Assembly (NCBI GenBank): GCA_964035545.1
Contig: OZ037771.1
Coordinates: forward strand, 5,613,190 to 5,677,189
Origin: Bugula neritina
Taxonomy: Eukaryota > Animalia > Bryozoa
Length of the DNA stretch: 64,000 bases
Direction: 5' to 3'
Under the pieces are notes generated by a model. The model did not search any database, had not been told where the DNA came from, and saw nothing but the letters and a program-made list of their open reading frames with translations. A program made the position numbers and the translations under genes. Shown here in pieces: positions 555-56,642 of this stretch (position 1 is its first letter; each line of letters begins with the position of its first letter).

Positions 555-638
555 CTGGCTATGTACTCCACAAATATTACAAAGTAAAAACAGCAACAAT
601 GTATATGCATAGCACATTCTGTAAACACAGCCACCCAT
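555..638 (-). CDS. Exon 1 (signal peptide) of type-B TLR-like gene B0; rest of gene lies left of the window
   Basis: ATG at 638, MGGCVYRMCYAYTLLLFLLCNICGVHSQ then gtaagt donor; nearly identical to exon 1 of B1 (22827-22910) and B2 (46454-46537). Confidence 0.8.
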
Positions 639-3412
639 GGTGACAGCTAGCTGATAAATGATGAGCCTGTGTGTTCATAGTTTAGCAATATGGCTGTCTA
701 AATAGCTTAAGCATCTGTTTCCTTGTTTCCTCGTTGAAATAACTGCTATTTATTAGTGAGAAACTGGTTTTGCTTTATCAAAAACATATTCAATAAGAAT
801 TTAATTGGATCAAAACCAGATGCACTGCTTTAGCTACTCCTTGTCGTGGTTGCTACTGTCTTTTTTTATGTTTATTATGCAGTTATATTATAGCAACTAC
901 AATATAGATTAGACAGCATAATAATAAAGGACTGTATTTATTCAAAGGCAAGAATGTGACAAGTAAAACTTTGAGATACAACTGCAAAAAGGTTAGCTAG
1001 TTAGCTGGTCTAGTTTAAATATAAATTGCTGCTGTAGCTATAGCATTCATATAGTGATACCAAACAAGATCTCTATACACTGTATGATTTTACACTTTTA
1101 ATATGATTAGGTAATTAGTAATTTTTACTGCATTATCAATAATGTCATCGTCTGAACAACAAGCAAACGGCTATCAGTTTGCAATATATTATAATATAGT
1201 ATAATATATATTTTGCTTATAATACAAATTTACAATATCATCATTTAACAATAAATTAAAGAATAGAAGCTCATATAATAAGTGTTGAAGCAATGACATG
1301 GCTGTTACCGAAGGCATTAAAAATGAATTTCAGAAATTACCAGCGCTGTTTAAAACCATACTTTTCTTTTATTTGAATGCTAAAATAGCACTAATCAATA
1401 ATGTACTTTATTTAAAATTAGTTATTATTATGAGATTATATTCTTCTTGAAATATAGGAAACATTTGAAGCAACAATTTTATAATATGCAGTTATCCTCA
1501 AACATGATATCGTCATTTTTAAAATTAGGTATGATCTTAGCATATAAATGAATGGATACAATTTGAGCTTATTTGTCAACAACAATTTTTTTTTTTGGTT
1601 GACTTTGCAAAAAGAGTTGCACTCTACTTTAATTTTTCTGCGAGATTTAACAATTTCCTTCACACCCATGACTGCAGATGCAGTAAATGATTATTGTATA
1701 AACAGAGCTAGTAGTTGTTAGCATCATGGATTACCATATGTTAAACTTACATGACCTTAGATATAGACAATTAGACAATAGCTGTAATGCAGTACAAATA
1801 ATATTACTCTGACTACTTGCCAAGAAGCAGTTATACTGGAAGTCTGTGGACAAGTAAATCAAAGCCTTTGCAATTTAGTGATGTATGAATAATACATTCG
1901 CTATCAAATTACTGTATCTAGTAGATAATGTCAAATAAAACATGGAAGACAACTAGCAATCTACTGTAAAAAGGTCAAACATGCTGCTAAAGGTTTTTCT
2001 CAAATCTATGAGCTATCTAGACTTTCATGGCTCACAAGTGCAAATACTATTAGCAATACTTCAATCTATGCATTGATACTAATAATTGCGGAATGGCTGT
2101 TCACTGTTGTGTATAAGTTTGATAATAAATCTGCCTACTTGAATGCTCTTATAGGTAAAAAGACATTTACGTAAAATAACCACCAGGAAAAAAACCATTG
2201 CCAGTTTTTGACAAACGTATGACTATAATCACCTCTTTAGATTATTTTGTCAAGGGAAAATGAATATAATTAGCATACAGTTTTTGAGGAAATAAAAACA
2301 GTTTCTTAAGCTAAAACCTATTATACGCAGCCGAATAAAATGAACTGTTAACGAAAACCGATTCCACTAAATATTGCATATCAAGCAGCAAAAAATTGTA
2401 ACTATACCGACAATGAATCAGTTATCAAAAGGTATGGATAATAATTTTAGTATTGCTGTGAAGGCTAGACAAGGAACTGTTTTCTAGTAACTATTATATA
2501 GTGGATCTATTTATAGATAATTGCTTAGGTGCTAGAAGTAACAGATAACAATTGGGGTTCAAGTTCTTACAGAACACAATACATGTTTCGTAATCTATTG
2601 TATTCTTAGGCTGATTGTTCACATCGCAAAGGTTTGAGGAAAAATATGGCTGTTTTTTGGCATCACACATAAACTTTTAACAGATCAAAAATATTTGTCT
2701 CCGACGTTTGTAACTGTCAGCTGCAACAGACAGTTTCTATAATTGAAAATGCTTCAATGTAGACAGACTTATACGCTGTAGATTATTTGTCATTTCATCT
2801 TATAACAAAATGCAGCTTGAATTGTGTGATTATCCGAACAACATGAGGTCTATCACAGTTATATTCTCTTGTTTTAGAATGCAGATTGAAAACATTTGTA
2901 ATTTTGTTAAAGTAAAAAAATTTAGAAATTAGGTCAAAAAGCAGATGAAAAATTAAGCTTTATATTAACCACTAGCATAAAAAAGTTACTGCATAGAATA
3001 GCTGGCAAGAGGCACAGAAGTTGTATTGTTCATATTTAGGTACTCCAGTTATTTTAGCAACTAATCATGCATTACATAAAGAAAATATTATAAACTAAGG
3101 AGAACAGGTTTTTTTGTGAACATAAATATTGTTACCATGGTTACGCCACTTGACAATTCTATATAATTATAATATAGCAATAGAATAATAAATGAATTGA
3201 TAACTGTTTCATAATGCATCCATTACTATTGTAGTAGTATCACTAGTTCTAAATCTATACAAGTTATTATAATGTATAACTATTGCACTTTAGCAACACA
3301 GTCATGCATGTCATTAAGTGCGTTGTATACCAGAATATGCAGCTTGCAGTACATTACAGAGACTAACTACTTAACTTTTACATTAATGTATCTATTCATT
3401 CTCCAAGTTAAA

Positions 3413-4899
3413 CTTTGCCTAGGGTGTTGAAGACACTTATACGATCAAATTGTCTCATATTGTTGTAGTGGTGGTGAAATGCACACAGTCTATATATAAG
3501 ATGATGACGGAAAACATAGAGAACTATAACAATGATAGCAGCTATTACAGAAAACGAAATGATTAAAATGAGGTTTTTCTGTAAAATATCTTTTGTCTCA
3601 GTAAAGCTAGAAAGTTTTTCAACTTCACTTGAGATAATTGATGTCGTCGGATTGTTGTAAAATAATTGTTATCTTCCGTTGTTTTCAAAGTGATAATTGT
3701 TGTAGAGTCAGAACTTTTGCTCTTATAATCAAAGTTTTGTCACAAACTTTTTGAAAAAAATTTTAGATACAAAACAAAACTATTGTTTGGGGCTGAGTAG
3801 GGGCTGAGGCTAGGTGTGCCTGTAATAAACAGCTCCTCTAAAGATTTGTGTAGCGGGTATAACTCCGAATAGGCATAGCAATGTGCTGGTAGGTAGTTCT
3901 GCTTCATTCTGTAGCCACATGGTGCAACATGTTATAATAATAAATTCTTATATAGCAATCCCTTATTGTTAAAGTTAAAGTTGGGTATAGCAGGTTGAAT
4001 GCATGCAATGAAGAAGTGATAAACATATCCTGGTAACAAAAAATTGCTTTTATTACATTATTAAAATAAAACCTTAATATTAAAATTAATCAAACATGTC
4101 GAAGATCAGTTTTTCCAATTTTGCACTCAAGTGCACAGCAATCAATTCAAAAATAATTATGTAACTCGGCACTAATATGGCATTATACTGGTTCATAAAA
4201 CCTGGATTTTAGTTCCAGAATGAAGCAACCCACTGACATCATATTTTATATGACGCTTACATATTCTAGTTATATTATCAACTTATTAACTCAAATAATC
4301 TGTGCGTATTGAAGAAGATATTATTGGTATGAATTGCACTTGTAAAAGCAATGAAAATTTAGAGTTAGATATTTAAAATGAACATAAAAATCATTTATCT
4401 TAAAAACCCTTTTTGCTGATCAGTAAATCTAATAAAATATATCAGTAGTTTAGCTAAAAGCCTTCAACTATTTTTTGGTAATAGATAAAACACTATATAC
4501 TGTAACATAATACTATTTACAATATACGTACCTGAGTGTCTTCAGAGTTGTCAGTCCTTTGAATGAGTCTCTACTGATAGTTTCATTAGAAAGTAGAATA
4601 TTGTTGAAAGAGATGTTAAGATGTAAGAGTCGTGTATTGGAGGCAAATACGAAGGAACCTATGAATGAAATCTTGTTGTAGGAGAGATCAAGATACTCAA
4701 GGTCAGTGAGAGGTGAAAGGTCAGGTATGTTGCTGAGGTGATTGTGATTGAGTTTTAGTACTCTGATACCAGTTGTATTGAGAGTTGGTGGTACAGAGAA
4801 CTGTGTTATTTGACTATCGCTACAGTCCATGACACCAGGTAAATCACAGGTACATCTCTCTATCTCACAAAGTTTTTCACACTGTCTGCTTTGAATAAA
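3413..4899 (-). pseudogene. Type-C TLR pseudogene C0 with internal deletions
   Basis: Intact exon 2 (4532-4899). Exon 3 (starts 3908) is fused at ~3790 directly to the stalk part of exon 4. CGA>TGA at the RQNFDYKS motif, a frameshifting ~49-nt deletion at ~3660, a recognisable TM (NLILIISFSVIAAIIVI), and a junction at ~3413 that removes the TIR exon. Confidence 0.9.
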
Positions 4900-7120
4900 C
4901 TATAAAAAAAAACAAATGCAAGTTGAACTATTTTAGTTGCTATCTCCGTTTGACATTTTGATAAAAAGCTATAGTAGTAAGCAATACTCTTAATTTGCGT
5001 AGCTTGTATACTATGCACAACTCTTGTGTAGTATGTTAAAAATTGTTTTTTCTTTGCCAAACAAATGTTCAACCAAGATTTAATTGGATTAATAGCCTAA
5101 TGTAAACACTGCTTCCTGTTAATTCTTCTTAACAGCAAATCATTTTCTTGTGAGCAGCATTGCTTTGATGGCTGCTATTGAAATGTTTTATTTATAATTA
5201 GAAGCTTCATATATTTTATCATATTTAAAGATTTTTTTATATTTTTCAGTCTTCTGTGAAGCAAGTTATAGACTGATCTATGAATGCATATTTAAGCGTA
5301 TACAGAAAAATCACGGTTTTTTTCTTTATTGTGAGCCTACGTGAAACAAGATAATATGGGTGATTTTTTGACCATTTGTCACTTTATATTATAACTACAA
5401 TATACAACAATTAGCCACTAAACTTTACAGTAATGGACAACTACAATATGCCAAAATTATGACATGTAAATACATGAGCTAGAATGAGAATGGGAACATG
5501 ACAAGTTTGACTGCGCTTTCTTGTGCACAAACTGTGTTGGTGGTTAAGGATACCATGCCAAGGTATATATTAGACATCATATGAGTTCATAGGGCAATAC
5601 CGTCTAAGTCTTTTTCCAACATCTGGAGCAGTTTGCAGGCAGAATTGGCTTGTTATGAGGTGACTTGAGCATTTGAGTTCAGATCTATAAGGGCCTGCCA
5701 GTCACCGGGTACGAGTGGTAGATAACTCACAACAGCACTCTCACTGCTGACTTCCAAATATTTTTTGCACACATGCGAGACAAATTGATTTTGTAGAGAG
5801 CTGTGGCCGGTCATTCTAAGACAGACCAAGTATTATAGGTGCTGCTGCTGTTTTTAGGAAAGGGCAGCAGCAACTGAGTAGCAATGCTTACTGTTTCAGT
5901 ACTTTTTTTACTAGTACTTGTAATTTTTGTTATTTATTACTATTTAACTTTTCTATTTCTATAAATCTATATCAATTATATATGCATGTACTAAATACTG
6001 GCATTTCAGCACTAGTATAATAGGGTTATTAGACATAGCCAGTTTTTCTTCTGAGCGTTTAGATTTGGGATCAGCCGAGGTGGCGCAGGCGTAACTCAGT
6101 GATGATTCATGGTAACAGTAGCATCTCAGAGGTGTCTCTGCTACAGATTGCCAAGTTTTATTTTCATTTTAGGGTCAAGCTACTTTATTTATTATACATA
6201 AGTAAATCACGATCAAAAATTAAAGTTTGCTGAAATTCATGAAAACGTAATATATGTCGGGTAATTCTATGTGCTGATTTTAACTATGCATAGCATAAAC
6301 AAGCTGCAACATTAAAATGTAAAGTCTTGTCATATGAACTAAATATAAATTATTTATACAGACCGTAATGAAAAAAAGCCATTATGTTCTGTATATCCAA
6401 AAATTATTAAAAAGTTGAGAAAAAGCATAAACAACTGAGCAGAATTAGAAAAAAGAACCTCTGATTATTTGGTTGCATTTGTTTATATTTTATTAATTCA
6501 AGACAAAAAACTATTTACATCAGCAAGTAAATTGTGAAATATAACTACAACTAGACATATATTGAGTGTGTAGTGAATTAAGTAAATTGACCCGCAATAA
6601 CTATTATGTTTCATTGTATATATTTTGCTGCAATTGTTATAATAGCACATATGGCATTATCTTGTCATTATAATTTCATTATACTCATTGAATTAACAAA
6701 AAAAATTCTAAGGCTAAATACAAGTAAAACGTCCACCTATGCACCAAGCACAGCATACAGCTGTCATTAATTAAGAGCACTTGAAGTCTGATTCAAGAAA
6801 TTGGTGTTTGAAATTAAAGTTTGTTGGTTGAAAGTTGAAATGTTTTTGTTTAGCAAATGTATTTGCATTTATAGCCTATAATCATATTTTTTCTTAAAAA
6901 CTAAAAAAGAAGAGAAAAATATAATTGTTATCGTGTTGGTAAAATATAATCTTCGACACCAATGACACTAACGGAATTATTGTAGTTACTGCAGAGGCAT
7001 GTTTTTGCAAGAAAATTATGTACAGCCTAAATATTGGTCCAACTTACTATCTTTACACTAGAATCATAAATATATAGCTGTTCACACTTTCAATTGTTCA
7101 GCAGTTATCCTAAAGCTTTT

Positions 7121-7230
7121 TAGGCCGCTTTGGAATTCCCTTTGCATAGGGGCAACTGTGGGCCCTACTCGATGACCATTCGGCAACCACCATGCGTAAG
7201 GCACAACTATTTGAGCAATTGCAGTAATTT
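7121..7230. repeat. Interspersed repeat fragment (also ~30504-30613; diverged inverted copy at ~53005-53118)
   Basis: Reverse complement aligns with 53005-53118 (aattactg.aattgctc.aata.ttgtg.c.tacgc.tg.tggtt.ccgaatggtcatcg.gtagggcc.acagtt.cccct). Confidence 0.7.
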
Positions 7231-7939
7231 TACTCTGATATTTCGTCATTTGTGTAAGCAAATGTAAGTGATAGAATATGTAGTTAAACTAATTAGCCTT
7301 AAATTAAAATATCAGCTTTAGTAACCAACAACATCTACTAAATTTTTTAAGCTACATTAGCGATGCGATAAAAAATGTTTTAGCATTTCACTGTGTACAC
7401 TAGCAATGCCTGCTGCAGACAAATACGTCTGCACCATTCTCTGTGCAAAGCATCTATTGGTCATTATGGCATTTACCAAACTAAAAGCTATGGAGACCTC
7501 AGTCAATTGTAAGTAGCAATAACTTACCATAGTATAAATTTAACCAAAAATATTAATATCTATTGTCATTATGTATATGTTATATTATTTTGTAAATTGC
7601 TTTTTAATGAAGCATTACTACAAATTTAAAAGTTACTTTTAACCTTTTAAGATAATGAAGAAGAAGCAATGTAAGTATATTGACCATATTCATGTTATCA
7701 GTTTCTTTCAAGTTTAATGTTTTGAAGAAATTTCTTTAGTTATTGTAGTACATATGGTGTATATACAGCATACAAATATATAAAAATTAAAAGTATATAA
7801 GATAGGCTCTAAGATGAATCAGTGTATACTGTAATATGTGTTGACCAAAGACCATTATGAGTACTATGGTGTAATACATGTTTAAAGATAAAGAAAAGAC
7901 AAATTCTCTAATTAATTAGAATTTAGCCTAGTAGCCAAC

Positions 7940-9130
7940 TGCGGTCTCACTTTACCATAATGATAGAATTGGAACTTTTGACGTCAGGTGATTTTACTGA
8001 TGACTTGGAGTTGAGTAATCGCCAAGATGATTTATAATAATCATGAGGTTGATTGATTACTTAATTTAGTCGAGGTGTCGTACTGACTAGGTGAAGTCTC
8101 CTAAAAGGGAGTGTTTGATTTTAGCGCTGGCTACAACTGAATCTATGTGCTCTGTTGCAGGTGAGACTGGCCCTGGATCTCCAGGGATGCAAGCATTGAT
8201 AGATCTGCATCCTGCCCCGTGGGAGGAGATCTCAGACAAAGGGTTAGAACTCCTGTTTGACATGCATTTCGCTATCAGCCGAGCAGCCACCACCTGATGT
8301 TAGTGCCATGCAATTCACAACTACCGCAACTACTACTAGTAATTTACCGGAGTTACCCCAAGCATTGATGCAAAAGACAACCTGGACCACACGGCGTACA
8401 AAACTACTCATTCAGATTTTAATTGGTCAAGACCCAAATAGATAGTGTGACTAGTGTCGACGAACATTTCCTACCATTTAGAGACTTAGAGTGCATGTAC
8501 CTCCGTACTTTGCCATAACGTTCTGTCCATGCGGCACGCACCATTTTAACCACGATTACGTTTTTCGACACCAACGGACAATTAATTATTATGTTGAAAA
8601 TATCGATGATGTGGACCAGGACACCTACCCGGAATTCAGAGACGTAATTATCTCACACATTTCATCATCGTCTCGGAAAGAAATTCCTCTTAAAAGATTT
8701 CCCAGCATCAGACCCACAGGAGAAAGCGACTCCAACAACATCAATACTTCCCCAGATTCTGTAGTCCCCCTTCCTCTGTCGTGGAGAATTGTCCTCTTCG
8801 TGTCCTGTTAACACGCTCCAACTAGTCAGTAGATAGTTCAACTCGTGCTCTTCCTCCACATTCCCCTTCTCTCTCGAAAAAAAGGAGGAAAACTAAGGCT
8901 ACCTCTACTCTTGCTGACACACTGAATCATAAAATTCAGATTGATTTGGACAAATTACAATGGCAGTTTGTCCGGTTGTGTAAGGAGTGACGCTGGACAG
9001 CCTCAAAGTTGACCCAGCTTCAGGAACGTTTTTCATAGTAGACGGACTAGTAAACAATTCATCTTCATCGCATGATTGTACAGGGAGATCCTGCTTTACC
9101 CGGTGAGCTGCCTCAGCTGGTGGTAGCGTA
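7940..9130. mobile_element. Degenerate GC-richer transposon-like segment, family not determined (copy ~31320-32510)
   Basis: Shift to higher GC/CpG, broken ORFs including HVPPYFAITFCPCGTHHFNHDYVFRHQRT, next to an LTR-like segment; no RT or integrase motif recognised. Confidence 0.4.
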
Positions 9131-9317
9131 AATTAAAGTTACATTTTCATGTCTTCTTCTAATATTGTGTTTCAACTGTCATTGTATGCTATACTCAGCT
9201 TTTACTCTGGTTATGGGAATATGTGTGTCCAAATTTATATGTATATATTCTGCATGTTTCATGTTTCAAAAATTTAGTATTAAAATAATAATAATAATAA
9301 TAATAATAATACCAAGC

Positions 9318-9602
9318 TGTTGTCATGGCACTGCGGTGGATGTCTTACCCGTTTCCTTGGCTTCATCTCCTGCCTCAGCTCCTGATTGCTTTGGTTTATC
9401 GGCAGCCGTACTTCCCGATAGGTGGGAGGTGTAGAGATTTTGTGGACTAACCAGAAGCTACGCAACTCTCGGACTACGCACCACTACGCTAGCGTAGTCA
9501 CATAGTTAATCATGATGATACGTTACGCTACCTTTCATCCTATTGACTAGTAATCATCCCCCCACATTGGCTAATGATCAGTGAACCCTATAATTCACAA
9601 CA
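9318..9602 (-). mobile_element. LTR-like segment (copy 32701-32985)
   Basis: TGTTGT...ACAACA inverted termini; on the minus strand followed by gcTTGGTA (PBS-like); internal CTACGC repeats and a 16-bp palindrome at 9483-9498; no TSD found. Confidence 0.35.
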
Positions 9603-10300
9603 ATAACATGGAACAGCTCTCTATGGTTGATAACATGGAACAACTTTCAGCAGCAATTATAATATAAAATATATTTTTGCAGTCCTAATTCATCAAATAG
9701 CAACAAATTTCACTGATATTTATTTTGATATCTCAGATATAAATTGCTTACAACTTATGAGTTTTAGGCAATAAGCAGTGAATCAAAGTTATCAGTAGTT
9801 TAAACCATTTTACGTATCATTCGTCAATTCATGGAGTGAATTGTACATGCACTGACTTAATGCATATTCATGAAAGCATTTTATAAGTGAAATTTGCAGT
9901 TTTCTACAAGGTGTTATAACTTATAAACCAAGCTTAACAGAAGTCTCTAATTTCTGCTAGTTAAAGTAATTGGTAATAATTGTTGTCTCTAGATGAACAG
10001 CCAGCTTTGATTGATGTGTTCAAAGGTATATTTTGATGACAAAAGACAAATACTACAAAGTTAGTAAGATACAAAACATTTAAATTATACATCATATTGC
10101 TTTAGATTAGCTCTCTAACAATGCACAATCTACATATCATGTCTATACAAGTTCTACATTCTTTTAGTCACTTTTTATTTATTAATTATACAGAGCAAAG
10201 CATCAGTTAGGGTTAACAGTTTAAAAGTCATTCAACGTAAAATTGATGAAGTGTTTTGCCAAATAAACAAATAGTATTGGATATTTGAAAGTACATTGAT

Positions 10301-15698
<5,398 letters not shown>

Positions 15699-16869
15699 GT
15701 TGAGAATATAAGGCAAATTATTGCCTATTATAGCTAGCAGTAGTAAAATGTTCAATTTAAGTAACTCCTTTGAGACAAAAGCGTGGTAGTCACTGATCAA
15801 ATAGGCTACGATCTTCAATGAACATCCTTGTGAATGCTGGCATATGTGCGGAAATATGTATAATTCGACGTCACATTTAAGTGTAATTTGCGTTTCTAAA
15901 CCATCAGTGGCTGGAATTAGTTAATATATTATGATAAGTAAATAATAAAAGATAAAAGACGGTGCGTAAAAATATTAACTTAAGCAAACAAGATTAGTGT
16001 TATCAAGTTTTGTTGATGCATACAAAAGTAACAATTCTATTGGCTGATTTTAAAGGAAACGTTATATTTTTAGTCGCAAGCCTTTCATAATCAAGCTTAG
16101 AATGTGCATTAAGTAAATAGCAAATATAATAATTAAAATATATTATAGCGACAGCTGTGTCTTAATTATATATTAGATACCAATTAGTTAATAATCAGAC
16201 AGAACCAACATCATTATTTACTGGCCCATCTGACCCAATTTACTAAAGTGTTAGAGAAAATTTTAATTCTCATTTAGCATATTGTTTAAAGTGTAGATTG
16301 GATCAGAATATCTACTTTATATAATGAAAAAATCTACATATAAGACTTACATATATCCATGAAAAGCATGTTTTATCCATGACAAGTAGTTGCAAAAGTT
16401 ACTTGCTTCGGCCATTTTATAGTTCAGATAGCAGCAAAAAAATATTCACCTATTATCCATTTGTGATTGCAAAATAAACCATTTAGCCGAGCAATTTGAT
16501 CATCCAAGTTTTATGTACAGCTGTTTGGATTTTAATTGTTATTTCATAGAAAGAAAACAATAAAAGAAGCATGATTATTTGAACCATCACATGGCCAAGT
16601 TAAACTACACAGAAAAATAACTTTTATTCAAGTAGCTCAATACTACTAGATTATTATTGGTGCCAAATTGCAAATAATAACTGTTTACTATGCTACCGCT
16701 TGGTGACAAGAATAGCTTCAATGACAATATGGGGGGTTTTCTAACGTTTTCATTATGATAACCAGCAATTATAGTAGGCCGTATTTTTTACCTTATTAAT
16801 TTAACCAGTTAAACAAGTTTTATGAAAATGGTTTTACATTTATTGATTAGTCTTTGAATTAAAAGATTT

Positions 16870-17740
16870 TAAACAGTAAATGATATGCTTGTAGAAACCA
16901 TCGATTAAGTGGTCTGGGCTGCTGGTAGATATATTATTTTGGATCGTGGAATTTAACTCTCAGTCCCTCATCTTACTAATGTGGGGAGGCTATTGGGTAT
17001 TTAGTATTGTGGAACATGTACTATTTTTATCAGTATGTAAGAAAATGCCCTTGAATCTAATGAGCATAGGTATACTACTTGTTTGTCAGTGAGCATAATA
17101 TAAGTGTAATATTTTTACAATCATGTTATATTTGATCTTATTATGTAAACTTGGAGTTATCTTTTCATAATATTGTAGCTGTTCGATATACATGCAGTTT
17201 TGAACGTATTTTTTATTTCTAGATTAGCTTGCAAAGCTACACAGCTTTAAACTTTCTGCTAAGAGTCAGGAAGATATTATTAGTTAGCAAACAGAATCTT
17301 TATTTTTTAGTAACATATATGGCTGCTCGTTTGCTAAAATCTTAGAAATTGTTATATATTGTATTAAAATAAACCTTGTACTAAATAGATACAAATTTGA
17401 CTATGCCACAATTTGAAGATCACCTCTCTTGTTCCACAAAGAAATAATACATTAGATTAATGAAATAGCAAACTAACAAACTCACAGCAACAAATAATAA
17501 TAGACATCACATATGCAACTAAATCATAATATATTGTAGATGTTGAAGATACAATGATGATAATATATGCATGCATAGTGCATTATACACATACTGACTA
17601 GCATACTATTGTAAAAAACATAAATTATTGTTTCACAATACAAATAGCATAACCATGTAATTGGCAAACACTTCGACATTGTTAAGTTGGTAATGGCCAT
17701 TTCACTTAGCACAGTGAATCCATATAAAAAACTGGCTTGT
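16870..17740 (-). pseudogene. Decayed cytoplasmic/TIR remnant downstream of the B1 stop codon (copy ~40190-41063)
   Basis: In frame after the stop and past a second TGA: NNVEVFANY (type A has EECRVFASH). Near 16870-16995: NSLPTLVR (cf. DHLPKLLTR) and DHLIDGFYKHIIYCL (cf. SHIREGFIKTIVETL). Weak, by-eye similarity. Confidence 0.45.
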
Positions 17741-33683: not shown

Positions 33684-39021
<5,338 letters not shown>

Positions 39022-41063
39022 GTTGAGAATATAAGGCAAATTATTGCCTATTATAGCTAGCAGTAGTAAAATGTTCAATTTAAGTAACTCCTTTGAGACA
39101 AAAGCGTGGTAGTCACTGATCAAATAGGCTACGATCTTCAATGAACATCCTTGTGAATGCTGGCATATGTGCGGAAATATGTATAATTCGACGTCACATT
39201 TAAGTGTAATTTGCGTTTCTAAACCATCAGTGGCTGGAATTAGTTAATATATTATGATAAGTAAATAATAAAAGATAAAAGACGGTGCGTAAAAATATTA
39301 ACTTAAGCAAACAAGATTAGTGTTATCAAGTTTTGTTGATGCATACAAAAGTAACAATTCTATTGGCTGATTTTAAAGGAAACGTTATATTTTTAGTCGC
39401 AAGCCTTTCATAATCAAGCTTAGAATGTGCATTAAGTAAATAGCAAATATAATAATTAAAATATATTATAGCGACAGCTGTGTCTTAATTATATATTAGA
39501 TACCAATTAGTTAATAATCAGACAGAACCAACATCATTATTTACTGGCCCATCTGACCCAATTTACTAAAGTGTTAGAGAAAATTTTAATTCTCATTTAG
39601 CATATTGTTTAAAGTGTAGATTGGATCAGAATATCTACTTTATATAATGAAAAAATCTACATATAAGACTTACATATATCCATGAAAAGCATGTTTTATC
39701 CATGACAAGTAGTTGCAAAAGTTACTTGCTTCGGCCATTTTATAGTTCAGATAGCAGCAAAAAAATATTCACCTATTATCCATTTGTGATTGCAAAATAA
39801 ACCATTTAGCCGAGCAATTTGATCATCCAAGTTTTATGTACAGCTGTTTGGATTTTAATTGTTATTTCATAGAAAGAAAACAATAAAAGAAGCATGATTA
39901 TTTGAACCATCACATGGCCAAGTTAAACTACACAGAAAAATAACTTTTATTCAAGTAGCTCAATACTACTAGATTATTATTGGTGCCAAATTGCAAATAA
40001 TAACTGTTTACTATGCTACCGCTTGGTGACAAGAATAGCTTCAATGACAATATGGGGGGTTTTCTAACGTTTTCATTATGATAACCAGCAATTATAGTAG
40101 GCCGTATTTTTTACCTTATTAATTTAACCAGTTAAACAAGTTTTATGAAAATGGTTTTACATTTATTGATTAGTCTTTGAATTAAAAGATTTTAAACAGT
40201 AAATGATATGCTTGTAGAAACCATCGATTAAGTGGTCTGGGCTGCTGGTAGATATATTATTTTGGATCGTGGAATTTAACTCTCAGTCCCTCATCTTACT
40301 AATGTGGGGAGGCTATTGGGTATTTAGTATTGTGGAACATGTACTATTTTTATCAGTATGTAAGAAAATGCCCTTGAATCTAATGAGCATAGGTATACTA
40401 CTTGTTTGTCAGTGAGCATAATATAAGTGTAATATTTTTACAATCATGTTATATTTGATCTTATTATGTAAACTTGGAGTTATCTTTTCATAATATTGTA
40501 GCTGTTCGATATACATGCAGTTTTGAACGTATTTTTTATTTCTAGATTAGCTTGCAAAGCTACACAGCTTTAAACTTTCTGCTAAGAGTCAGGAAGATAT
40601 TATTAGTTAGCAAACAGAATCTTTATTTTTTAGTAACATATATGGCTGCTCGTTTGCTAAAATCTTAGAAATTGTTATATATTGTATTAAAATAAACCTT
40701 GTACTAAATAGATACAAATTTGACTATGCCACAATTTGAAGATCACCTCTCTTGTTCCACAAAGAAATAATACATTAGATTAATGAAATAGCAAACTAAC
40801 AAACTCACAGCAACAAATAATAATAGACATCACATATGCAACTAAATCATAATATATTGTAGATGTTGAAGATACAATGATGATAATATATGCATGCATA
40901 GTGCATTATACACATACTGACTAGCATACTATTGTAAAAAACATAAATTATTGTTTCACAATACAAATAGCATAACCATGTAATTGGCAAACACTTCGAC
41001 ATTGTTAAGTTGGTAATGGCCATTTCACTTAGCACAGTGAATCCATATAAAAAACTGGCTTGT

Positions 41064-44000
41064 TCAAAATAGAAATAGTACTAAAACTGTAGCAATTGTT
41101 GTAGCAACACCGATGGCAACTAGCTGTTCTGATTGTCCACCAGAAGAGTCTGTGCTAGTACTAACAGTTAGTGAGTCATAGTAATCACTGATTGTCATAT
41201 CTAATCCGTAGCAATAAAACTGAGAATCACATTTAATAGCTGGAGATGTAAGCAGCCAGTGGATATAACTAACGTGAGACTCATTGTTAGAGCATAGGAC
41301 AGTGTTTCCTGTGAGTTCAACGTAAAAGTTGTTATTCAATGATTGATTGTCAAACTCATTTCGAAATTCTTCTTCAATGTAGTGAATGCTGTTGTTTATT
41401 AAGTTAAGGTAATCAAGTTTAAGGTTTTTAGAGATGGTGATGTTCCAACTAAGAAGTTCATTGCCATGGAGATCGAGATGGGTTAAGTTCGGGTGATGAG
41501 AGAAGAAGTCAAAGTCTGAAAAATATAAAATTCCACCTTCCTGATTTCCAAAATGAAGCTCCTCTAAAGCTGGAGCACCTCCTAAAAGCTCTCCAGTTAC
41601 ATCATTTCTTAATTTTTCACCAAATTTATTTTTAGTCAGCACCAAAGTTTTGACTGGGAAGTTAGTCAGAAAATCACGAGACCACCCAACAATACTGCAG
41701 TCAATGCAAACCAGTTTAGAAAGATATTGAAATCCAGTAATATTGCGACATGATATAAATCCAACTTGAGAGTATGACAGAGTTATGGTTTCAAAATTAT
41801 TGAGATACATTTCCATGTTAGAGCATAGTGGAGTTGATTCATTTCTCCGGACATCTTCAGACACGGTGAAATCATTATAATCAATAGCTAAAGTTGTCAG
41901 ATGTGCAGGGACAAAGTGAAAATTAATTCTTCCCCTGTTTAGCAATGTACGAACAACACGATTCCAGTAATATTTTACTGTAAAATCTACAGCTTTATCA
42001 GACACATAATCGATTCCTTGTGTTCTGATATAATCTATAGCAAAGTTGATCACATTTACTCGATTTAAACATAACAATGAAGTAGAAAGAAAGTCAAGTG
42101 AACATTTCTTTTGAAGATGGTTCATAAGTTCGTTGAGAACATGGATGTCAACTATGTTAGGAATGTGAGTTACATTCCAATCAAACCTATCTTCAGTGAA
42201 CAAATAACTATCTTGGTTACAATCTAGAAGATCTGGGTAGTAGTCGTGTCCATCACATGAATACTCTTTAGTCATACCACGAAATGCAATGTAACGAATG
42301 AACGGGGTCTGGAGTTTTGTGTTGTTGAACAGTGCTTCAACAAATGGTTGTAGCTTTTGACCGTCTTCACCACACGACACTTGTAGAGAAGAATGGTTTA
42401 ACTCATTCTGACTAATATCCAGATATAGCAGTCCTTGACAGTACTGTCGCAAGTTGAGCGTTTCTGGAGTTTGTATGTGGTTCGCTTGCATGGACAAAAC
42501 TTGTAGTGGAATTGTAGAAAGAGGAATGACGTCACCAATGTTGATATCCCACCAGCAGAATTTTGTACCCTTCTCTGGAATGTTTATATGGTCAAGTAAA
42601 AGTGTGTGAAGTTTACTGTTTGCGATTCCGTTAAAAATGTCAGAAAGGTGTTCTTTTAACGGATTACAGGATAAGTCAAGTTTTAGTAGAGAATTTGTAA
42701 AACTTTTTAAGAATTCTTGATTAATACTATTTACATGACAATTTCTGGCAGAGAAACGTTTCAAGGGCAAACTTGAAAGAGGCGACATTGAGATGTTGGT
42801 CAACTTTGGAGTATCACAGTCAGGCCCACCTGCAAAAATATATTATCAACTAAATTACTTTTTTATATAATACTTGGACCAGTATAAAAAAGCAGCTACT
42901 CATTCTAAACAATGTTGTAAAGGTAATAACTGGCTATAGCCTTCGGGTATACTCAGACTGCTGTTTTAATGATTTCTTGAGTAAAACACATGCAGGGAAG
43001 TATTTTGATAAAAAAGTCTAGTGGGTTGTTAAGAGAGAATTTGATCGATTATATTTGATATTTTGTGATCTTAAAAACCAGCTTTCTGTTGTTACAGTTG
43101 AGTTTCAGAATATTACTTTTAACTAGTAGCCTACTTATTCAACCAGAGAAATTATTAGACGAAAAAAAAATTTTCAGCATGCTTAAATTAATTGCAGAAT
43201 GTTATATAAAGTTTCAATTACTGAACTGACATAAATTTTGCATTTTAATCTAATGAGTCGTTACAATTTCAAAGTTTGAAGTTTTAAGCAAAATGGTCAT
43301 CATTTGTTTCACTGGCAATAAAGCTATGCGATGTTTGACAAACAAAGCTTTAAAACTATAAATATCATAAGCTTCTCACATTATGAGATTAAAATCATTG
43401 AAATTTAATAATATGTGACCCAGGCAGTCAGAAAAGCACTTTGTGACAAAATTCACATTTTTAGTTAAAGCTTGATTCTTATTTGCCTCTTTATACTGAT
43501 TGATTTGCAGTTTAAATTTTCGAAATCGGACCACTATTGTGTAATAGTGGTCCGATTTCAAAAATTTAAACTGCAAATCAATCAGTATAAAGAGGCAAAT
43601 AAGAATCAAGCTTTAACTAAAAATGTGAATTTTGTCACAAAGTGCTTTTCTGACTGCCTGGGTCACATATATTTTAGATCCTCATTATTAGCAAAATCAG
43701 TAAACATATTTCATAAGCTGAATCTATTTTGTACTAATTTAATTTAATGTAATCACACAAGGAAATCTTTAGTTAGACAACAGAAAGTTTTATATGTTGA
43801 TACCAATAGCAGCAGGAGGTAGATACTCTATATTTATACACATTGATGTCAAAATCTCACAATGTGCTTTGAGTTTTTGGGAGACGTAAAAGCTGTTACT
43901 TATATTGCATTCTTAAAAATAACTTGTGTGCTCTACATATAGTCATCCTAAAGGTTAAAATTCTCAAGCTACTTTTTGAAAAATAAATGCCCCCACTGAG

Positions 44001-46537
44001 AATCGAACCCGAGACCTCTGGCAAGCAAGTGTGCTAACCAATACACCACGGGGATCACTGATAAACTTAGCACAATACTTATGATTTTATCTATTGTTGC
44101 GACATATTGTTGTGTAGCATATATATGCAAAACAGCAATGCAATATTTTAGCAATATTTCTGTATTATTAAGAAAAACTCAATTTAACTTTGTTTTACAA
44201 AAATAATTTTTTCCAAACTTAAACTAATGACACTTTTTTCAAGCTTAAACTAATGACACAGAAAAATAAACATATCTCTACGTTAATTACTGCACATTTT
44301 TCATGATCAAAATCAATCATGACTATTTCCTTGAGCATGACTAATATTAGCACCATGTTACCTATAGCATATCCTCATAGCAACTTAATATATTTTAATT
44401 TTAAACTTATCTATTTCAATATTTTGTGTTTTTTTTATATAAGGCAGTTTACATTTTTTTACATCAACTGACACTAAACACATAAATTTAGGTTACTCAC
44501 CAATGCTCAATGTGTGTAGTCTATGAAATTCTGTAAAGACTGTGCTAAATGCTGGGGTTCCAATCAAGTAAAGTTCTTCCAGTGAGTTGTTGAGAGGAGC
44601 CAAGGCTGAATATTTAAACCCTTGAACAGGTTTGTGACCTTCTTTCTGTTTTAGTCTACAAGTTGGGCAAACATAATTCATACAAAGCAATTAACTATAA
44701 CGGCCAAGAACAGTTTAGCGAAAACTTAAATTTTGAAGATAATACCAGTAATTTTTAATAAAATATAACTGGTTCACTCTTGCAATAAAAACAAGCATAA
44801 TAAATTTGTTTATGCTTTTACTAAAAGAACATGACTTAATATGCAATTCACAGAAACACATCTGCATACTTATGTAGTTTACTAGGATCAGAAATTTCAA
44901 TTTATACTGCAATTTATATGCATGCTGCTATTTATAGACAGCTTAAGCTGAGTGATTTTAAAAGGTAATTTTCTCACAGCCAACTTTTTTTGTAAGAAAA
45001 AAGAAATAATACATTCAATTAGTACTACGATATATCAATTCTGCTTAAATGTAATTTATGTTTTTTGCTCTAAATATAGGAATTTTTAATAGTCTTTTTA
45101 TTCTACTTGCCATTGATTTAATGAAATTATTTGCTATAAAATATGTACCTGAGTGTCTTTAGAGTTGTCAGTCCTTTGAATGAGTCTCTACTGATAGTTT
45201 CATTAGAAAGTAGAATATTGTTGAAAGAGATGTTAAGATGCAAGAGTCGTGTATTGGAGGCAAATACGAAGGGAGCAATGAATGATATTTTGTTGTAGGA
45301 GAGATCAAGAGACTCAAGGTCAGTGAAAGGTGAAAGGTCAGGTATACTATTGAGGTGATTGTGATTGAGTTTTAGTACTCTGATACCAGTTGTATTGAGA
45401 GTTGATGGTACAGAGAACCGTGTTATTTGACTATCACTACAGTCCATGACACCAGGTATATCACACGTACATCTCTCTATCTTACAGGGTTTTCCACACT
45501 GTCTTCCTTCGGCAAACTATAAAATAATAACGTGAATAGGATAACTTTAGTTACCTAAGGTGGTACATGATGAGAAAAGCAAAATAATTTTAGAATTTGG
45601 CATAAAATTTATGTTCATGCCTGGTCCTTTCTCAGATTTATTACCATTCATTGAAATCGTTCTTCCTTGTATTTTGAAATACGTAATCTGTGTAACCATA
45701 GAAACAGTATTTTACTCGCAGCCAACTTGCTTTTAAACACGTTTCCAAAGACCTTGGGTTCAGGTGTATGAGTTTCAAAACACAGTTTAATTGTTTGTAT
45801 TGAACCAAGATATTGCATCATATGTTACAAAGCTGTAATATTCTAGTGTTTTACCATTCATTTATCTTACGCAAACACGCAAAAAAAGAAAAAGATATCT
45901 AAATGGTTTATCACAGTAAATATTATAATCACCAGTAATTCAACCTTCAATAATTTGTAACTCTAATCAGAGAGTGTTAATGATGGTGTCTTCAAATTGA
46001 TATTAACTGGTAGAAAGCAAAGGAATAGTAAGAACCAGCCATTCATCCACTTGTCAACTTTTTACATCTGTATAGACTAGCAATATCAGTAACACCTAAG
46101 CTATACGTTACTTATGTAGTTAATTCATTTAATTTTATGGACTATTTTCTACACTCAATAGCTAAGAGTAGTTTAACGGTTTTTGAGTTCGTACCACACC
46201 ATGCACACAACACATACACTGAACACTCACAACACACTAAACACACAACACACACACAACACACACAACACACACAACATGCACACATACATACTCAAAC
46301 AAACACAATGAATTTTTAAAAAGCACAAATATAGTAACTGTGGGTACTGCAGGTATTTAGGCAAACACTGCTGCTAGCCATGAAGGAGAGAATACATAAA
46401 TTTATCTAATATCTAGCTTTTTCTCACACTATATATATAGTACTTGAACTTACCTGGCTATGTACTCGACAAATATTACAAAGGAAAAACAGCAACAATG
46501 TATATGCATAGCACATTCTGTAAACACAGCCACCCAT
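41064..46537 (-). CDS. Type-B TLR-derived LRR receptor B2, 790 aa, no TIR
   Basis: Exons 46454-46537, 45149-45516, 44501-44655, 41064-42829; open frame; same terminal VLVLFLF*. Confidence 0.85.
43411..43670. mobile_element. 260-bp foldback/MITE-like palindromic insertion in B2 intron 3
   Basis: Arms 43411-43538 and 43543-43670 are reverse complements (one mismatch seen, 43521) around a 4-nt loop; termini TA-TGTGACCC...GGGTCACA-TA; absent at the matching B1 site (~20070). Confidence 0.9.
43989..44056 (-). mobile_element. tRNA-derived SINE head in B2 intron 3 (same position as 20391-20460 in B1)
   Basis: A-box TGGTGTATTGG and B-box GGTTCGATTCT on the minus strand. Confidence 0.6.
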
Positions 46538-47391
46538 GGTGACAGCTAGTTGATAAATGATGAGCATGTGTTCATAGTTTAGCCATGTGGCTGTCTAAAT
46601 AGCTTAAGCATCTGTTTCCTTGTTTCCTCGTTAAAATAACTGCTATTTATTAGTGAGAAACTGGTTTTTCTTCATCAAACAAATATTCAATAAGATAACA
46701 TGAGGTCTATAACTGTTATATTATCTTGTTTTAGAATGCAGATTGAAAGCATCTGTAAATTTGCTAAAGTAAAAAAGTTTAGAAATTAGGTCAAAAAGCA
46801 GATGAAAAATTAAGATTTGTATTACCCACTATATAGCATAAAAGAGCAACTGCATAGAATAGCTGGCAAGAGGCACAGAAGTTTTATTGTTCATATTCAG
46901 GTAAGAGAGTTATTTTAGCAACTAATCATGCGTTACATGAATAAAATATTATAAACAAAAAAGAACAGGCTTTTTGTAAACATAAATATTGTTACCATGG
47001 TTTACGCCAATTGACAATACTATATAATTATATTATAGCAATAACATCATAGATAAATTGATAACTTTCATAATGCATCCATTACCACTATAGCTTTATT
47101 ATTACTATAGTTCTAAATCTATACAAGTTATAATGTATAATTATTGCATTTTAGCAACATAGTCATGCATGTCATAAAGTGCGCTGTATACCAGAATGCA
47201 GCTTGCAGTACATTACAGAGACTAACTGCTCAACTTTTACATCATGTCTATTTATTCTTCAAGCTAAACTACCGCAAATAGTTTTATTACATTTCAAGTT
47301 GCTCTCAACCAGGTTTTTCTGTTGAAATAGCAGTGTAGATTGAATAGGAGGTTTTAGATTTTTAAGTCAATATGAATTGCTGTCTTTTAAG

Positions 47392-50300
47392 TTATTCATG
47401 CATATGCTGGCAGGGTACAAACGATGTTTTCTCTCTACCTAATGAGTTGAATAACTCATAGATAGGTTGACTGGCCGACAGTTCCATAATAAACTCCTGC
47501 ACAAAAGCTTTCAAGCTGCCATCTAGCTCTGGGTGAAGCCCTGTTGGCCAACATATGTGCTTCTTTTGAAAAATAATGTCAGTGAGAAGTTTTGGAAGAT
47601 GATCCAGTTGGGAAACGCAGTTGATACCAACTGTGACAACCAGTACCTCACTCTCTGGCTTCAATTTAATCAATTCAAACTCAAATTTAGTCACATCATC
47701 CTTCATGTAATCTGGTGTGACAAAGATCACAGCTTTCTCACTTTGAGCTATGAGCTTGGCTGTTACTGTCTTTAGCAATTGATTCGGTGATGCGGTGGTT
47801 GTGCTTGACGTAATTGTGATACTATCTTCAGAAAACTCTACTTCTTCTATTAGACCTGCAAATTTCAAATTATCGTGAGTAATAGAAAGTTGTGGCTGTA
47901 TATATGAATTACCATTAATATTTGATATACATATAGTATACATTAATACATACATATACATTAATACATTATAGTATTTATATATTCTCTCTGTTGTATT
48001 CAATTTTTGCAGCTGCTTATTTATGTTGAATTATCTTAAGAGAATAGCTAAAGTGAGATTTGCTAGTAAATGATTTGCATATGCAAATAACTAGTATATT
48101 ATAACATACTCACGGGCCACATGGTTAGAAATCAGTGCAGTGTGACTTGCATAAACTGGAAAGTCTTTGTCCAGGGTGTTGAAGACACTTATAGGATCAG
48201 ATCGTCTCATATTGTTGTAGTGGTGGTGAAATGCACACAGTCTATATATAACACGATGGCGGAAAACATAGAGAAGTATAACAATGATAGCAGCTATTAC
48301 AGAAAACAAAATGATTAAAATGAGGTTTTTCTGTGAAATTTCTCTTGTCCTGGTAAAGCTAAAAGGTTTTTCAACTTTACGTGAAATGATTGATGTCGTC
48401 GGATTGTTGTATTTATGACGTGTTGTTTTCATTACAGATGTTTCCTTGCGTAGAAAAGCAAAATAATTGTCATCTCCCGTTGTTGTTAATGGGGCAAATG
48501 TCGTAGAGTCAGAACTTTCGCTTTTATAATCAAAGTTTTGTCGCAGAGTTTTTGAAAGAGTTTTAGATAAAATAAAACTATTATGCTGGTCGCGGGTTGA
48601 GGAACTATTATCTTTAGTAGAATAATATTTATCGTAAAATGCGGCGATAGTTTCGTTTGCATGCAGGCACTTCAGATTCTTTACACAAATGACTGCTGGA
48701 GATGTTAACAACCAATTAATGTATTCTAAAATATTCGAGTTGTTTCTTTCACAATAAATTTTATTGTTTGTAAGATCAACAGTAAAGCCATTTTGAAGAT
48801 GTTGGATATCAAGCTCTTTACGAAATTTTTTTTCAATGTAGTGAATGTTATTACCCTGCAAGTTAAGATGTTGCAAGTCGGAATTCATGGCTATGGTGAC
48901 GTTCCAACTAGAAAGTCCATTGCCATGGAGATCCAGATACGTTAAGTTTGGATGATGTGAGAAAAAGTCAGCATCTAACAGATATGAAAGACTTTCCTTC
49001 TGGTTTCCAAGATAGAGCTTCTCAAGTGAAGATACAAAATTACTTTGCACTACTTCGGATTTTTTGTTGTTTGGAAATTCAAGTTGTTTTCGCTTTTTGA
49101 TTTTAAACAATTGTGTGGTACTGCATCCGGTGCACAGGAAAGTGCGTAAGTCATGAATCCTATAAGGATAAAGGCATGAGTTATTGCCTACATTTGAGTA
49201 AGCCATGTCTATGCGCTCTACACTGGCGAGATAATTTATTGCACTAGAGGCACAAGTCCAATTCTCTCCTTGAAAGTTATTATGGCCCATTGAAATGGTT
49301 GTAACTTTTGAGGACACAAATGCAATACTGCTTATAGTTTCTGACTTGCCACTTTGAACTGCTAGTGTATTTCTTAAAGTAGCAAGAGTTACACTGAGAT
49401 CTTGAGCTGATACATCTGTCACACCAATACTTTTAGCAAAGCTGTGAATATCGCCAACGATATCACTCAACTCTATAGCTTTCGAAGACAATGATAATAC
49501 AAGTTCAAACCATGTACCCCAACTACTTTTCAGGATGTAGTCAAGTTTTGGCAATGGGACAAAACTAGGCTTGTTAGACTGGTCCCAGTAGAAGTCATCT
49601 TCAAGAAAGAGGTAACTGTCTTCATTACAGTTTAGCAAGTAAGCCTTGTATCGTTGACTACAAGAAGGCTCTGTTAGACTCTGCAGCCCAATATATTTCA
49701 AAGATGGGATGTGATAATTTTCGTTATAGACAATGTGATTTGACAAAACATTTAGTTGACCTACAATCAGTTGGTTTAGTGACATCGACTTTTGCATGTG
49801 GTTTTGGCTCATGTCAATGTATGACAATTTAGGACAGCATAGCGTTAAATCAAAGCTGAAATGTGCTGCTAAGCCATTAGCTTGCAAAGACAATATTTTG
49901 ATTGGTGCGTTTTGAAGTGGTGCCATATTTTGGTCAGATAAATGCCACTGGCAGTTGCTTGTTTGGTGCATGTTGATATGGTCGAGGATTAGTGTGTGCA
50001 CACTACTGTAGGCTATCCCATAAGTTATTTCCTTTATATAGGGCATCAAATGGTTGCAAGACAAATCTAGCTTAAGTAGTGAGTCCTTGAGATTCTTTAA
50101 GAATGTCCTGTTTATCTTAGTGATTCCACAATTCCGAGCAGAAAACTTTTTTAAAGGAATGTAGGTGATTGGCCACAAAGGACTGTCATGTGTTAGCGAG
50201 GGGACGTGACAGGCTGCACCACCTAAAATTGGAATTTGAATTGATAAAAAGTTTAGCTCTTGCATTGTATTTGATTGAACTATAATGAACTTCTGCCAAA

Positions 50301-51907
50301 ACAAACAATGTGGGATGTGCCTGTTATCAGCATTATATATGATAATCTGCTACAACAGTCACATTATAGTCTCTTTAATATATATCATATTTTGAAAAAT
50401 ATCAAATATTTATATGTACTTCAACAACTACAGTAGGCCTGATCATTCTTAAAAAAGTACATGACTATAATAATAACTGTCATCAATCTATGTATAGCAC
50501 TAAATTTGAACAATAATCGTGAATATTTCTACAATTGAAAAATATTTTATACGAAGCAATACGTTATTCTGTATTACAAAATTAGGTCTTTGCATGTCAC
50601 ACTATGTAGTTAGTGAGAAATAGCATCATACAAGTAATAATATTTCAGTTTGCTTAAAAAGATATAGCTTATACTGGCTGATAGCTCAGTGTAACGTGCT
50701 CAGAGATCGTTTCTGAGAGTTTTACTTTTCTATATCTGTGTAGTGATACAACATGTCCATTAATTGCTAAATTTGTTTTACTTGTACATCAGCTCACCTA
50801 GACTGAGAGTATGAAGCTTGTGAAATGATGTAAAGTAGGGGCTAAGGCTGGGTGTGCCTGTGATAAACAGCTCTTCTAAAGATCTGTGTAGCGGGTACAA
50901 CTCCGAATAGGCATAGCCATGTGCTGGTAGGTAGTTCTGCTTCATTCTGTAACCACATGGTGCAACATGTTATAATAATAAATTTCTTATATAGCAATCC
51001 TTTATTGTTAAAGTTAACGTTAGGTATGGCAGGTAGAATGCAATGAAGAAGTGATAATTGTATCCTGGTAACAAGAAATGATTATTAAAACCAATCAAAC
51101 ATGCCGGATGTTAGTTTGCTCAATTTTACACTTAAGTTCCCAGCAATCAATTTAAAAATAATTATGTCATTCGGCACTAATACGGCATTATACTGGTTCA
51201 TAAAACCTGGATTTTAGTTCCAGAATAAAGCAACCCACTGACATCATATTTTATAAGACGCTTACATATTCTAGTTATATATTATTAACTTATTGACTCA
51301 AATAATCTGTGCGTATTCAAGAAGATATTATTGGTATAAATTTCACTCGTAAAAGCAAAAAAAAATACAGTTAGATTTTTAAAATGAACATAAAAAGTGT
51401 TGATCTTTAAAACTCTTTTTTTCTAATCAGTGAATCTGACAGAAATATATCAATAGTTTAGCTAAAAGCCTTCAACTACTTTTTTGTAATAGATAAAACA
51501 CTATATACTGTAACATAATACTATTTACAATATATGTACCTGAGTGTCTTTAGAGTTGTCAGTCCTTTGAATGAGTCTCCACTGATAGTTTTATTAGAAA
51601 GTAGAATATTGTTGAAAGAGATGTTAAGATGTAAGAGTCGTGTATTGGAGGCAAATACGAAGGGACCAATGAATGAAATCTTGTTGTAGGAGAGATCTAG
51701 AGATTCAAGGTCAGTGAAAGGTGAAAGGTCAGGTATGCTGTTGAGGTGATTGTGATTGAGTTTTAGTACTCTGATACCAGTAGTATTGAGAGTTGGTGGT
51801 ACAGAGAACTGTGTTATTTCATTGTCACTACAGTCCATGACACCAGGTATATCACAGGTACATCTCTCTATCTCACAGGGTCTTCCACACTCATGTTCAC
51901 TTTGAAC
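47392..51907 (-). CDS. Type-C Toll-like receptor C2 (LRR-LRRCT-stalk-TM-TIR); exon 1 not located
   Basis: Exons 51540-51907 (VQSEHECGRPCEIERCTCDIPGVMDC...), 50798-50946, 48114-50222, 47392-47855; 3090 nt open, same exon lengths as C1. Confidence 0.88.

Positions 51908-54900: not shown

Positions 54901-56642
<1,742 letters not shown>

Follow-up and report, generated by a model that had tools for sequence, protein, structure and literature searches.

Toll-like receptor (TLR) genes of the sea urchin Strongylocentrotus purpuratus form arrays with 26% pseudogenes (PMC3367398), and gene conversion has been described between the tandem genes TLR1 and TLR6 of mammals (PMC2077338; PMC3125219). According to two surveys, the bryozoan Bugula neritina lacks Toll-like receptors (PMC8609888, PMC10279657). 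We analyzed a 64-kb stretch of B. neritina DNA (the window; positions 5613190-5677189 of contig OZ037771.1 in assembly GCA_964035545.1, genome size 216 Mb), together with 50 kb of flanking sequence on its lower-coordinate side and 10 kb above, by stop-to-stop segment comparison and then tblastn. The window contains related, intron-bearing genes of types A, B, C and D, encoding proteins with leucine-rich repeats (LRRs), and we are confident that it spans the younger end of a tandem array comprising 11 divergent Toll-like receptor genes. The array was in all probability shaped by birth and death, being a lineage-specific TLR-like cluster subject to unequal crossover, exon-bounded gene conversion and gene decay.

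The array shares with the sea-urchin TLR families (PMC3367398) a lineage-specific expansion, tandem arrangement, many pseudogenes, a TIR domain that is more conserved than the ectodomain, and rapid turnover. Unlike the urchin genes, which are mostly intronless and canonical and number in the hundreds, the 11 Bugula genes bear introns, their LRR region carries a helical insert, and their TIR domain is so divergent that a full-length public protein falls below the Pfam cut-off. As in TLR1 and TLR6, adjoining paralogues keep parts of the gene homogenized while the ligand-binding parts diverge, but in Bugula there are several paralogue types and the N-terminal LRRNT exon is homogenized too. Type B, a TLR-type LRR ectodomain without a TIR domain, resembles RP105/CD180, CD14 and soluble TLR5. 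Unlike RP105 and CD14, it is recent, stems from a single deletion, exists in two near-identical copies and is known here from sequence alone. Donor-cassette systems, such as the chicken immunoglobulin pseudogenes and the lamprey variable lymphocyte receptors, combine an acceptor with many promoter-less partial donors, whereas the Bugula copies are whole intron-bearing genes, all types except C have their own first exon, and there is just one pseudogene type plus three dead fragments. Annotated B. neritina (EB796) proteins and a Watersipora protein named 'toll-like receptor 4' belong to the same family and have the same exon structure. Turnover in an invertebrate immune-receptor cluster can be followed here in compact, fully resolved form: a duplication bordered at a homogenized exon, exon-bounded conversion, a TIR-module deletion that occurred twice independently, and fresh nonsense mutations. 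The locus reveals no new mechanism, the pattern being that of the usual evolution of immune gene clusters; it is of use to bryozoan immunology and as a caution for gene surveys that depend on domain thresholds.

The related genes are all encoded on the minus strand, as are the long open reading frames of interest. In transcription order, the window contains seven related copies: C2, B2, A2, C1, B1, A1 and the fragment C0 (Table 1). An eighth gene, D1, enters it by its signal-peptide exon alone, which is why the feature drawn in a first-pass annotation of the window, made from its letters only, started at position 555. At lower coordinates the array continues with four intact TIR-bearing D-type genes (D1-D4) and two more C fragments; just outside the window, the D-type genes alternate with dead C fragments. 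Exon 2 is present in exactly 11 copies genome-wide, every one of them in this array. The genes share a five-exon plan. Exon 1 encodes a signal peptide, and exon 2 (core of 350 nt) the LRRNT and first LRRs; exon 3 measures 155 nt (149 nt in type C). Exon 4 (1.8-2.1 kb) encodes LRRs, a non-LRR insert, more LRRs, the LRRCT, a membrane segment and the first TIR strand, and exon 5 the remainder of the TIR domain. In nucleotide alignments, exons 2-5 were bounded by AG acceptors and GT donors with identical phases in all ten full genes (phase 2 at the end of exon 2, phase 1 at the ends of exons 3 and 4), and these junctions recur in the public gene models EB796_019979 and EB796_020371. The first-pass claim of at least eight related genes in one orientation with conserved exon phases was thus borne out. 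B1, B2 and D1-D4 each have a hydrophobic first exon with a GTAAGT donor, and type A has a candidate one.

The assignment of A, B, C and D to one TLR-like family (LRRNT-LRR-LRRCT-membrane segment-TIR, the TIR being deleted in B), as first proposed, was supported by domain, profile and structure searches; the family is lineage-specifically expanded. Queries were single exons or public proteins, with the broken exon of A supplied in pieces or with X at the stop. Pfam LRR_8 and LRR_4 matches and a weak LRRNT match were found in exons 2 and 4, and a hydrophobic stretch after the LRRCT forms a single membrane segment in every type. The Pfam TIR model scored 23.1 bits on the last-exon reading frame of A (cut-off 21.3) and a sub-threshold 17.4-17.9 bits on the D1 exon and full-length EB796_019979. 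The surveys missed the TLRs of B. neritina because the TIR of the public protein scores below the threshold (17.4 vs. 21.3 bits); the public Bugula models are labeled hypothetical. A profile of the A2 TIR region, searched against 1.84 billion proteins, gave 26 matches at E <= 0.001, and all eight distant matches scanned (E = 1.8e-12 to 7.5e-4) were Pfam TIR proteins, three of them also having LRRs. A profile search of the PDB with the TIR exon returned, among unrelated proteins, weak matches to the TIR domain of IL-1RAcP (E = 0.015), IL1RAPL1/IL1RAPL2, Toll-receptor-related 2 and TLR6. The AlphaFold2 model of B2 exon 4 (20-sequence alignment; predicted local distance difference test score [pLDDT] 82, predicted template modeling [TM] score 0.81) was an LRR solenoid with an all-helical insert at residues 228-297 and a membrane helix at residues 566-586. 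The PDB matches listed by Foldseek for this model were all TLR or RP105 ectodomains (probability 1.00), at TM-scores of just 0.2-0.44.

Type C is divergent. Its last exon had no Pfam TIR match, its TIR homology being based solely on 56-59% identity to the A, D and EB796 exons of Bugula, and the AlphaFold2 model of the C2 TIR exon (nine-sequence alignment) was unusable (pLDDT 52) and was not taken to fold search. The first-pass description of C as the TIR-bearing type holds as far as homology of the last exon goes; it is qualified by the failure of Pfam to detect the domain and of a motif scan to find a first exon, and type A bears a TIR domain as well.

We estimated divergence per block by the Nei-Gojobori method and assessed its heterogeneity by chi-square on the proportion of synonymous differences (pS). 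Synonymous divergence varied more than 10-fold between blocks of one gene pair. Between A and D genes, synonymous divergence (dS) was 0.09-0.14 in exon 2, 0.28-0.52 in exon 3, 0.6-0.9 in block I of exon 4, 2-3 in block II (the helical insert), about 1 in block III, 0.15-0.23 in block IV (last LRRs and LRRCT) and 0.17-0.20 in exon 5. Between C and the other types, it was 0.08-0.14 in exon 2 and 0.9-1.05 in exon 5, with saturation in exon 3 and all four blocks of exon 4. The homogenized blocks are the LRRNT exon in all types, and the last LRRs, LRRCT and TIR exon among types A, B and D. For C2 vs. D1, pS was 0.08 in exon 2 and 0.54-0.86 elsewhere (p = 7e-30); for A2 vs. D1, it was 0.12-0.16 in exon 2, block IV and exon 5 and 0.38-0.73 elsewhere (p = 1e-21); a third gene pair was also heterogeneous (p = 1e-9). 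Nucleotide identity followed the same course: 70-89%, then 50-60%, then 91-97% along exon 4 between A and D genes, and 92-97% in exon 2 among all types, whereas the 200 nt of intron on each side were at background (~60%) and unalignable between types. The proposed conversion tracts coincide with exons because the introns are non-homologous. Trees of individual blocks disagreed, C1 and C2 nesting apart among the D genes, on short branches, in exon 2 only. Within exon 4, a Sawyer-type runs test was significant (p <= 0.0025) for 4 of 15 pairs. The ratio of non-synonymous to synonymous divergence (dN/dS) was 0.2-0.45 overall and 0.6-0.8 in the helical insert, and nowhere exceeded 1.

Low-dS blocks within diverged tandem paralogues, combined with discordant block trees, support interlocus gene conversion at this locus. 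The first-pass annotation had noted sharp switches of identity along the genes and had attributed them to gene conversion and unequal crossover, naming congruent exon trees and uniform synonymous divergence as the contrary outcome; discordant trees and heterogeneous pS (p = 1e-9 to 7e-30) were found instead. A segmental duplication of about 23.4 kb made the second C-B-A copy. In the history that we propose, ectopic gene conversion would have homogenized exon-sized blocks, in tracts ending where introns were no longer homologous. The variable helical insert would be a fast-evolving, possibly ligand-facing part.

The C-B-A order, which had been taken for a repeating unit, occurs exactly twice, because the two segments carrying it are a tandem duplication with a period of ~23.4 kb, and the older part of the array is laid out differently. 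The cassette is one young segmental duplication, not a conserved unit. Compared in 500-nt windows, the core of the first unit (4796-18795, 14 kb) was 99.96% identical to ~28179-42118, with ~6 substitutions and a 60-nt change in the microsatellite of A1/A2 intron 3 as the only length difference. In the adjoining 8.5 kb (18796-27295), most of the sequence diverged from the other unit by 3.6-6.8%. Being near-identical over 14 kb, the cassette copies are not independent. Both borders of the duplication fall in homologous exons, the upper one coinciding with the 5' edge of C exon 2, the lower one with the deletion point of C0 exon 3. C1 looks like a crossover hybrid: it resembles C0 at the 5' end, in exon 2 and intron 2, and C2 in the remainder, exactly as unequal crossover between C copies predicts.

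Two of the three cassette gene types, A and B, are damaged. As had been claimed, the A genes are disrupted by nonsense mutations, two in-frame TGA codons being common to A1 and A2: GGA to TGA at codon 2 of the exon 2 core (15237-15239 in A1, 38560-38562 in A2) and AGA to TGA at codon 28 of exon 4 (12692-12694 and 36075-36077). The disabling looks recent, since no frameshift was found in 930 codons of A1 and A2 and dN/dS against D genes is near 0.3. Selenocysteine insertion or read-through at these codons, for which no SECIS search was made, is implausible: Gly and Arg codons were replaced, and the related genes have ordinary codons at both sites. C1 and C2 are open through exons 2-5 (the stop at 26610-26612 in C1 is intronic), and C2 has a Ser/Thr-rich stalk, a membrane segment and the TIR-homologous last exon. 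C0 is an old dead fragment in which exon 2 and the start of exon 3 are joined to a frameshifted exon 4 tail, followed by 3' flank. Compared with C1, C0 and the two fragments outside the window all have the same two deletions, of 2,249 and 895 bp.

The description of type B as TIR-less was correct. B1 and B2 are open through exons 1-4, terminate in a shortened membrane segment (...VLVLFLF-stop) and have no TIR exon. Their ectodomain is D-type, and relative to D3 they lack 844 bp comprising the rest of exon 4, intron 4, exon 5 and ~160 nt of 3' flank. The junction has 4 bp of microhomology, and the 3' flank of B1 (16621-17750, 1.1 kb) is homologous to the sequence from ~160 nt past the D3 stop codon. 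One 844-bp deletion stripped a D-type gene of its cytoplasmic tail and TIR exon, giving rise to B. The 895-bp deletion of the C fragments takes out the same TIR module. The module was thus lost by two independent deletions of ~0.85-0.9 kb, one in B and one in the common ancestor of the three C fragments, each removing the exon 4 end, intron 4, the TIR exon and ~120-160 nt of 3' flank.

Outside this genome, the nearest proteins were the B. neritina hypothetical proteins EB796_019979, EB796_020371 and EB796_020373 from assembly GCA_010799875.2 (73-98% identity per exon), none of them identical to a gene here, and next came Watersipora subatra proteins (~36-60% per exon). A BLASTP comparison found Watersipora homologues at 32-33% identity; a word search with the C1 large exon found no relatives, the likely cause being its length window and word prefilter. 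A protein-atlas feature search yielded merely generic LRR/TLR2/CD180/CD14 leads with low recognition. The homologous array DNA in GCA_010799875.2 is at most 92% identical and differently laid out, and the present genome therefore belongs to another lineage of the species complex or to a close relative. The parts of GCA_010799875.2 that were read contained no model of type A or type B and no full one of type C. On its contigs VXIV02003066.1 and VXIV02002975.1, array genes lie in both orientations; that array also includes a C fragment retaining its TIR exon, a D-type gene without the insert region, and a gene model of 1465 residues, possibly a fusion of neighbors.

Several observations weigh against a history of crossover, conversion and decay as told above. 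The abrupt shift between the units from 0.04% to ~5% divergence requires a second event, which could be recent homogenization or a polymorphic variant. Exon-2 copies of GCA_010799875.2 are as close to the present copies as these are to each other; as similarity is equal between two Bugula lineages and within one genome, this points to a past burst of homogenization, not to continuing exchange, and it speaks against the ongoing reshuffling that had been suggested. No signal-peptide exon was found for C0, C1 or C2 by motif scan of 3-4 kb upstream, so that even the C genes may be non-functional. In four public runs, which provided fragmentary contigs of unstated library type, no spliced joint was seen in the B1 region; the contigs of runs X3 and X4 cover the exons and parts of the introns, not 17201-17600 or 22401-23000. 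Finally, at 20 of the 22 scorable differences between the units, the best public DNA run (X1) lacked the unit-1-specific letter and carried the unit-2 letter instead, and X3 and X4 agreed at the three such sites that they covered, all in exon 2. The second unit is therefore not shared by the X1 sample.

The last of these points raises the alternative that the second cassette copy is not fixed: it could be a structural variant confined to the assembled colony, or the assembler could have placed two divergent haplotypes in tandem by error. The small number of substitutions in the core agrees with this, as does the share of 31-mers of 17001-23000 held by X1 (0.58), which is about what we estimate for a sample with the unit-2 version only. 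We nevertheless regard it as unlikely. The 124 kb of the locus contain no Ns or gaps, the units still differ by scattered substitutions and microsatellite length, and the assembly has no alternative-haplotype contig of the locus. The C0-like 5' end of C1 is predicted by unequal crossover and not by a haplotype join, which would leave it C2-like. Moreover, the runs come from other samples, and contig depth cannot give copy number. An assembly duplication is less likely than a real one.

A different question is whether B has a function. Its exon 4 is open over 587 codons, it retains its own signal-peptide exon and a D-type 3' flank, and RP105 was among the top fold matches of B2 exon 4. Its private branch is still under purifying selection (pN/pS 0.46; 42 non-synonymous and 24 synonymous differences), a value that does not date the deletion. 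The new C-terminus, composed of small residues, a short spacer and 19 hydrophobic residues, appears to resemble a glycosylphosphatidylinositol (GPI) signal. B could be retained as a surface protein, tail-less or GPI-anchored, but could equally well be heading to loss. That it is a newborn functional tail-less receptor, using its C-terminus for GPI attachment or as a minimal membrane anchor and modulating neighboring TIR-bearing receptors, is rather unlikely; if true, the origin of an RP105/CD14-like decoy would have been caught in progress.

The first-pass annotation went further and raised the possibility that C-B-A is a functional module, in which a signaling receptor C is paired with a tail-less partner B, and pseudogenes (A and the C fragments) act as donors for receptor diversity. 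Besides the features of B just listed, the raised dN/dS of the helical insert and the reality of the mosaic structure are on its side, but we consider such a module improbable. It exists only as two near-identical copies of one duplication, B being a deletion derivative tied to C by adjacency alone, and elsewhere in the array the partners are dead C fragments and intact D genes. The tail-less state was known only from B1 and B2: it was not seen in ~50 kb of the homologous array read in GCA_010799875.2, and metagenome scans for B relatives and for the exact 24-nt B deletion junction gave no match. A first exon of C was not found. Nothing shows A or the C fragments acting as donors; homogenization affects the constant blocks, whereas donor-driven diversification would do the opposite, and the variable block has no dN/dS above 1. 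Contigs of the B1 region, which drop rare variants, showed no somatic joints or mosaic variants of the kind expected from a donor-cassette system.

Strong purifying selection in place of conversion is a very remote explanation of why exon 2, block IV and the TIR exon are near-identical: these blocks do encode the structurally constrained LRRNT, LRRCT and TIR, with low dN/dS (0.2-0.3), but their synonymous sites are homogenized too (C2 vs. D1, above), the exon-2 tree does not place C1 and C2 as sisters, and exon 2 is not ultra-conserved, its protein being just 58-64% identical to the Watersipora homologues, so that constraint alone does not explain its similarity. Gene conversion remains our reading of these blocks, and the features of the array are listed in Table 1.

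Table 1. Genes, gene fragments and duplicated segments of the array (positions are relative to the window)
Feature	Position	Strand	Details
D1 signal-peptide exon	555-638	-	first of four intact D-type genes
C0, dead C fragment	2840-4881	-	exon 2 4532-4881; first 45 codons of exon 3; exon 4 tail 3414-3787
Duplication unit 1	3796-28266		unit 2 = 27208-51891; self-comparison
Gene A1 (pseudogene, near-identical to A2)	10301-15698	-	candidate exon 1 15633-15698; exon 2 14893-15242; exon 3 14342-14496; exon 4 10894-12777; TIR exon 10301-10713
Gene B1	17741-22940	-	exon 1 22827-22940; exon 2 21483-21832; exon 3 20832-20986; exon 4 17741-19506; deletion junction 17747-17750
Gene C1	23765-28264	-	exon 2 27915-28264; exon 3 27172-27320; exon 4 24488-26596; exon 5 23765-24228
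Gene A2 (pseudogene)	33684-39021	-	candidate exon 1 38956-39021; exon 2 38216-38565; exon 3 37665-37819; exon 4 34277-36160; TIR exon 33684-34096
Gene B2	41064-46567	-	exon 1 46454-46567; exon 2 45149-45498; exon 3 44501-44655; exon 4 41064-42829; deletion junction 41070-41073
Gene C2 (divergent type)	47392-51889	-	exon 2 core 51540-51889; exon 3 50798-50946; exon 4 48114-50222; exon 5 47392-47855
C fragments outside the window	-13823 to -12752 and -27728 to -26632		TIR-module deletion as in C0 (2840-3786)

The genome holds more TIR-domain genes beyond the array. Further TIR exons were found on the contigs labeled C3, C2, C17 and C7 (at 556894 on the last), scoring higher against Pfam TIR than the exons of this array do (27-40 bits, with only 23 bits for C17).

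The intergenic DNA of the array consists of dispersed repeats and array-specific sequence, and no additional genes were found in it. At 7119-8313 and at 53982-54900 / 55715-56642 there are dispersed repeat fragments, present dozens of times across several contigs, together with a direct repeat pair of 95% identity upstream of the array. Long perfect (CA)n/(TG)n microsatellites are located at 12821-13143, 36204-36466 and 32-347. The first two are the intron 3 microsatellites of A1 and A2, which end ~50 nt before the exon-4 acceptor and differ in length by 60 nt. In B1 intron 3, 20201-20600 is a high-copy dispersed repeat with very high depth in each of the four runs; X3 and X4 have a variant form of it, the 293 bp between 20309 and 20603 being swapped for 17 other letters.

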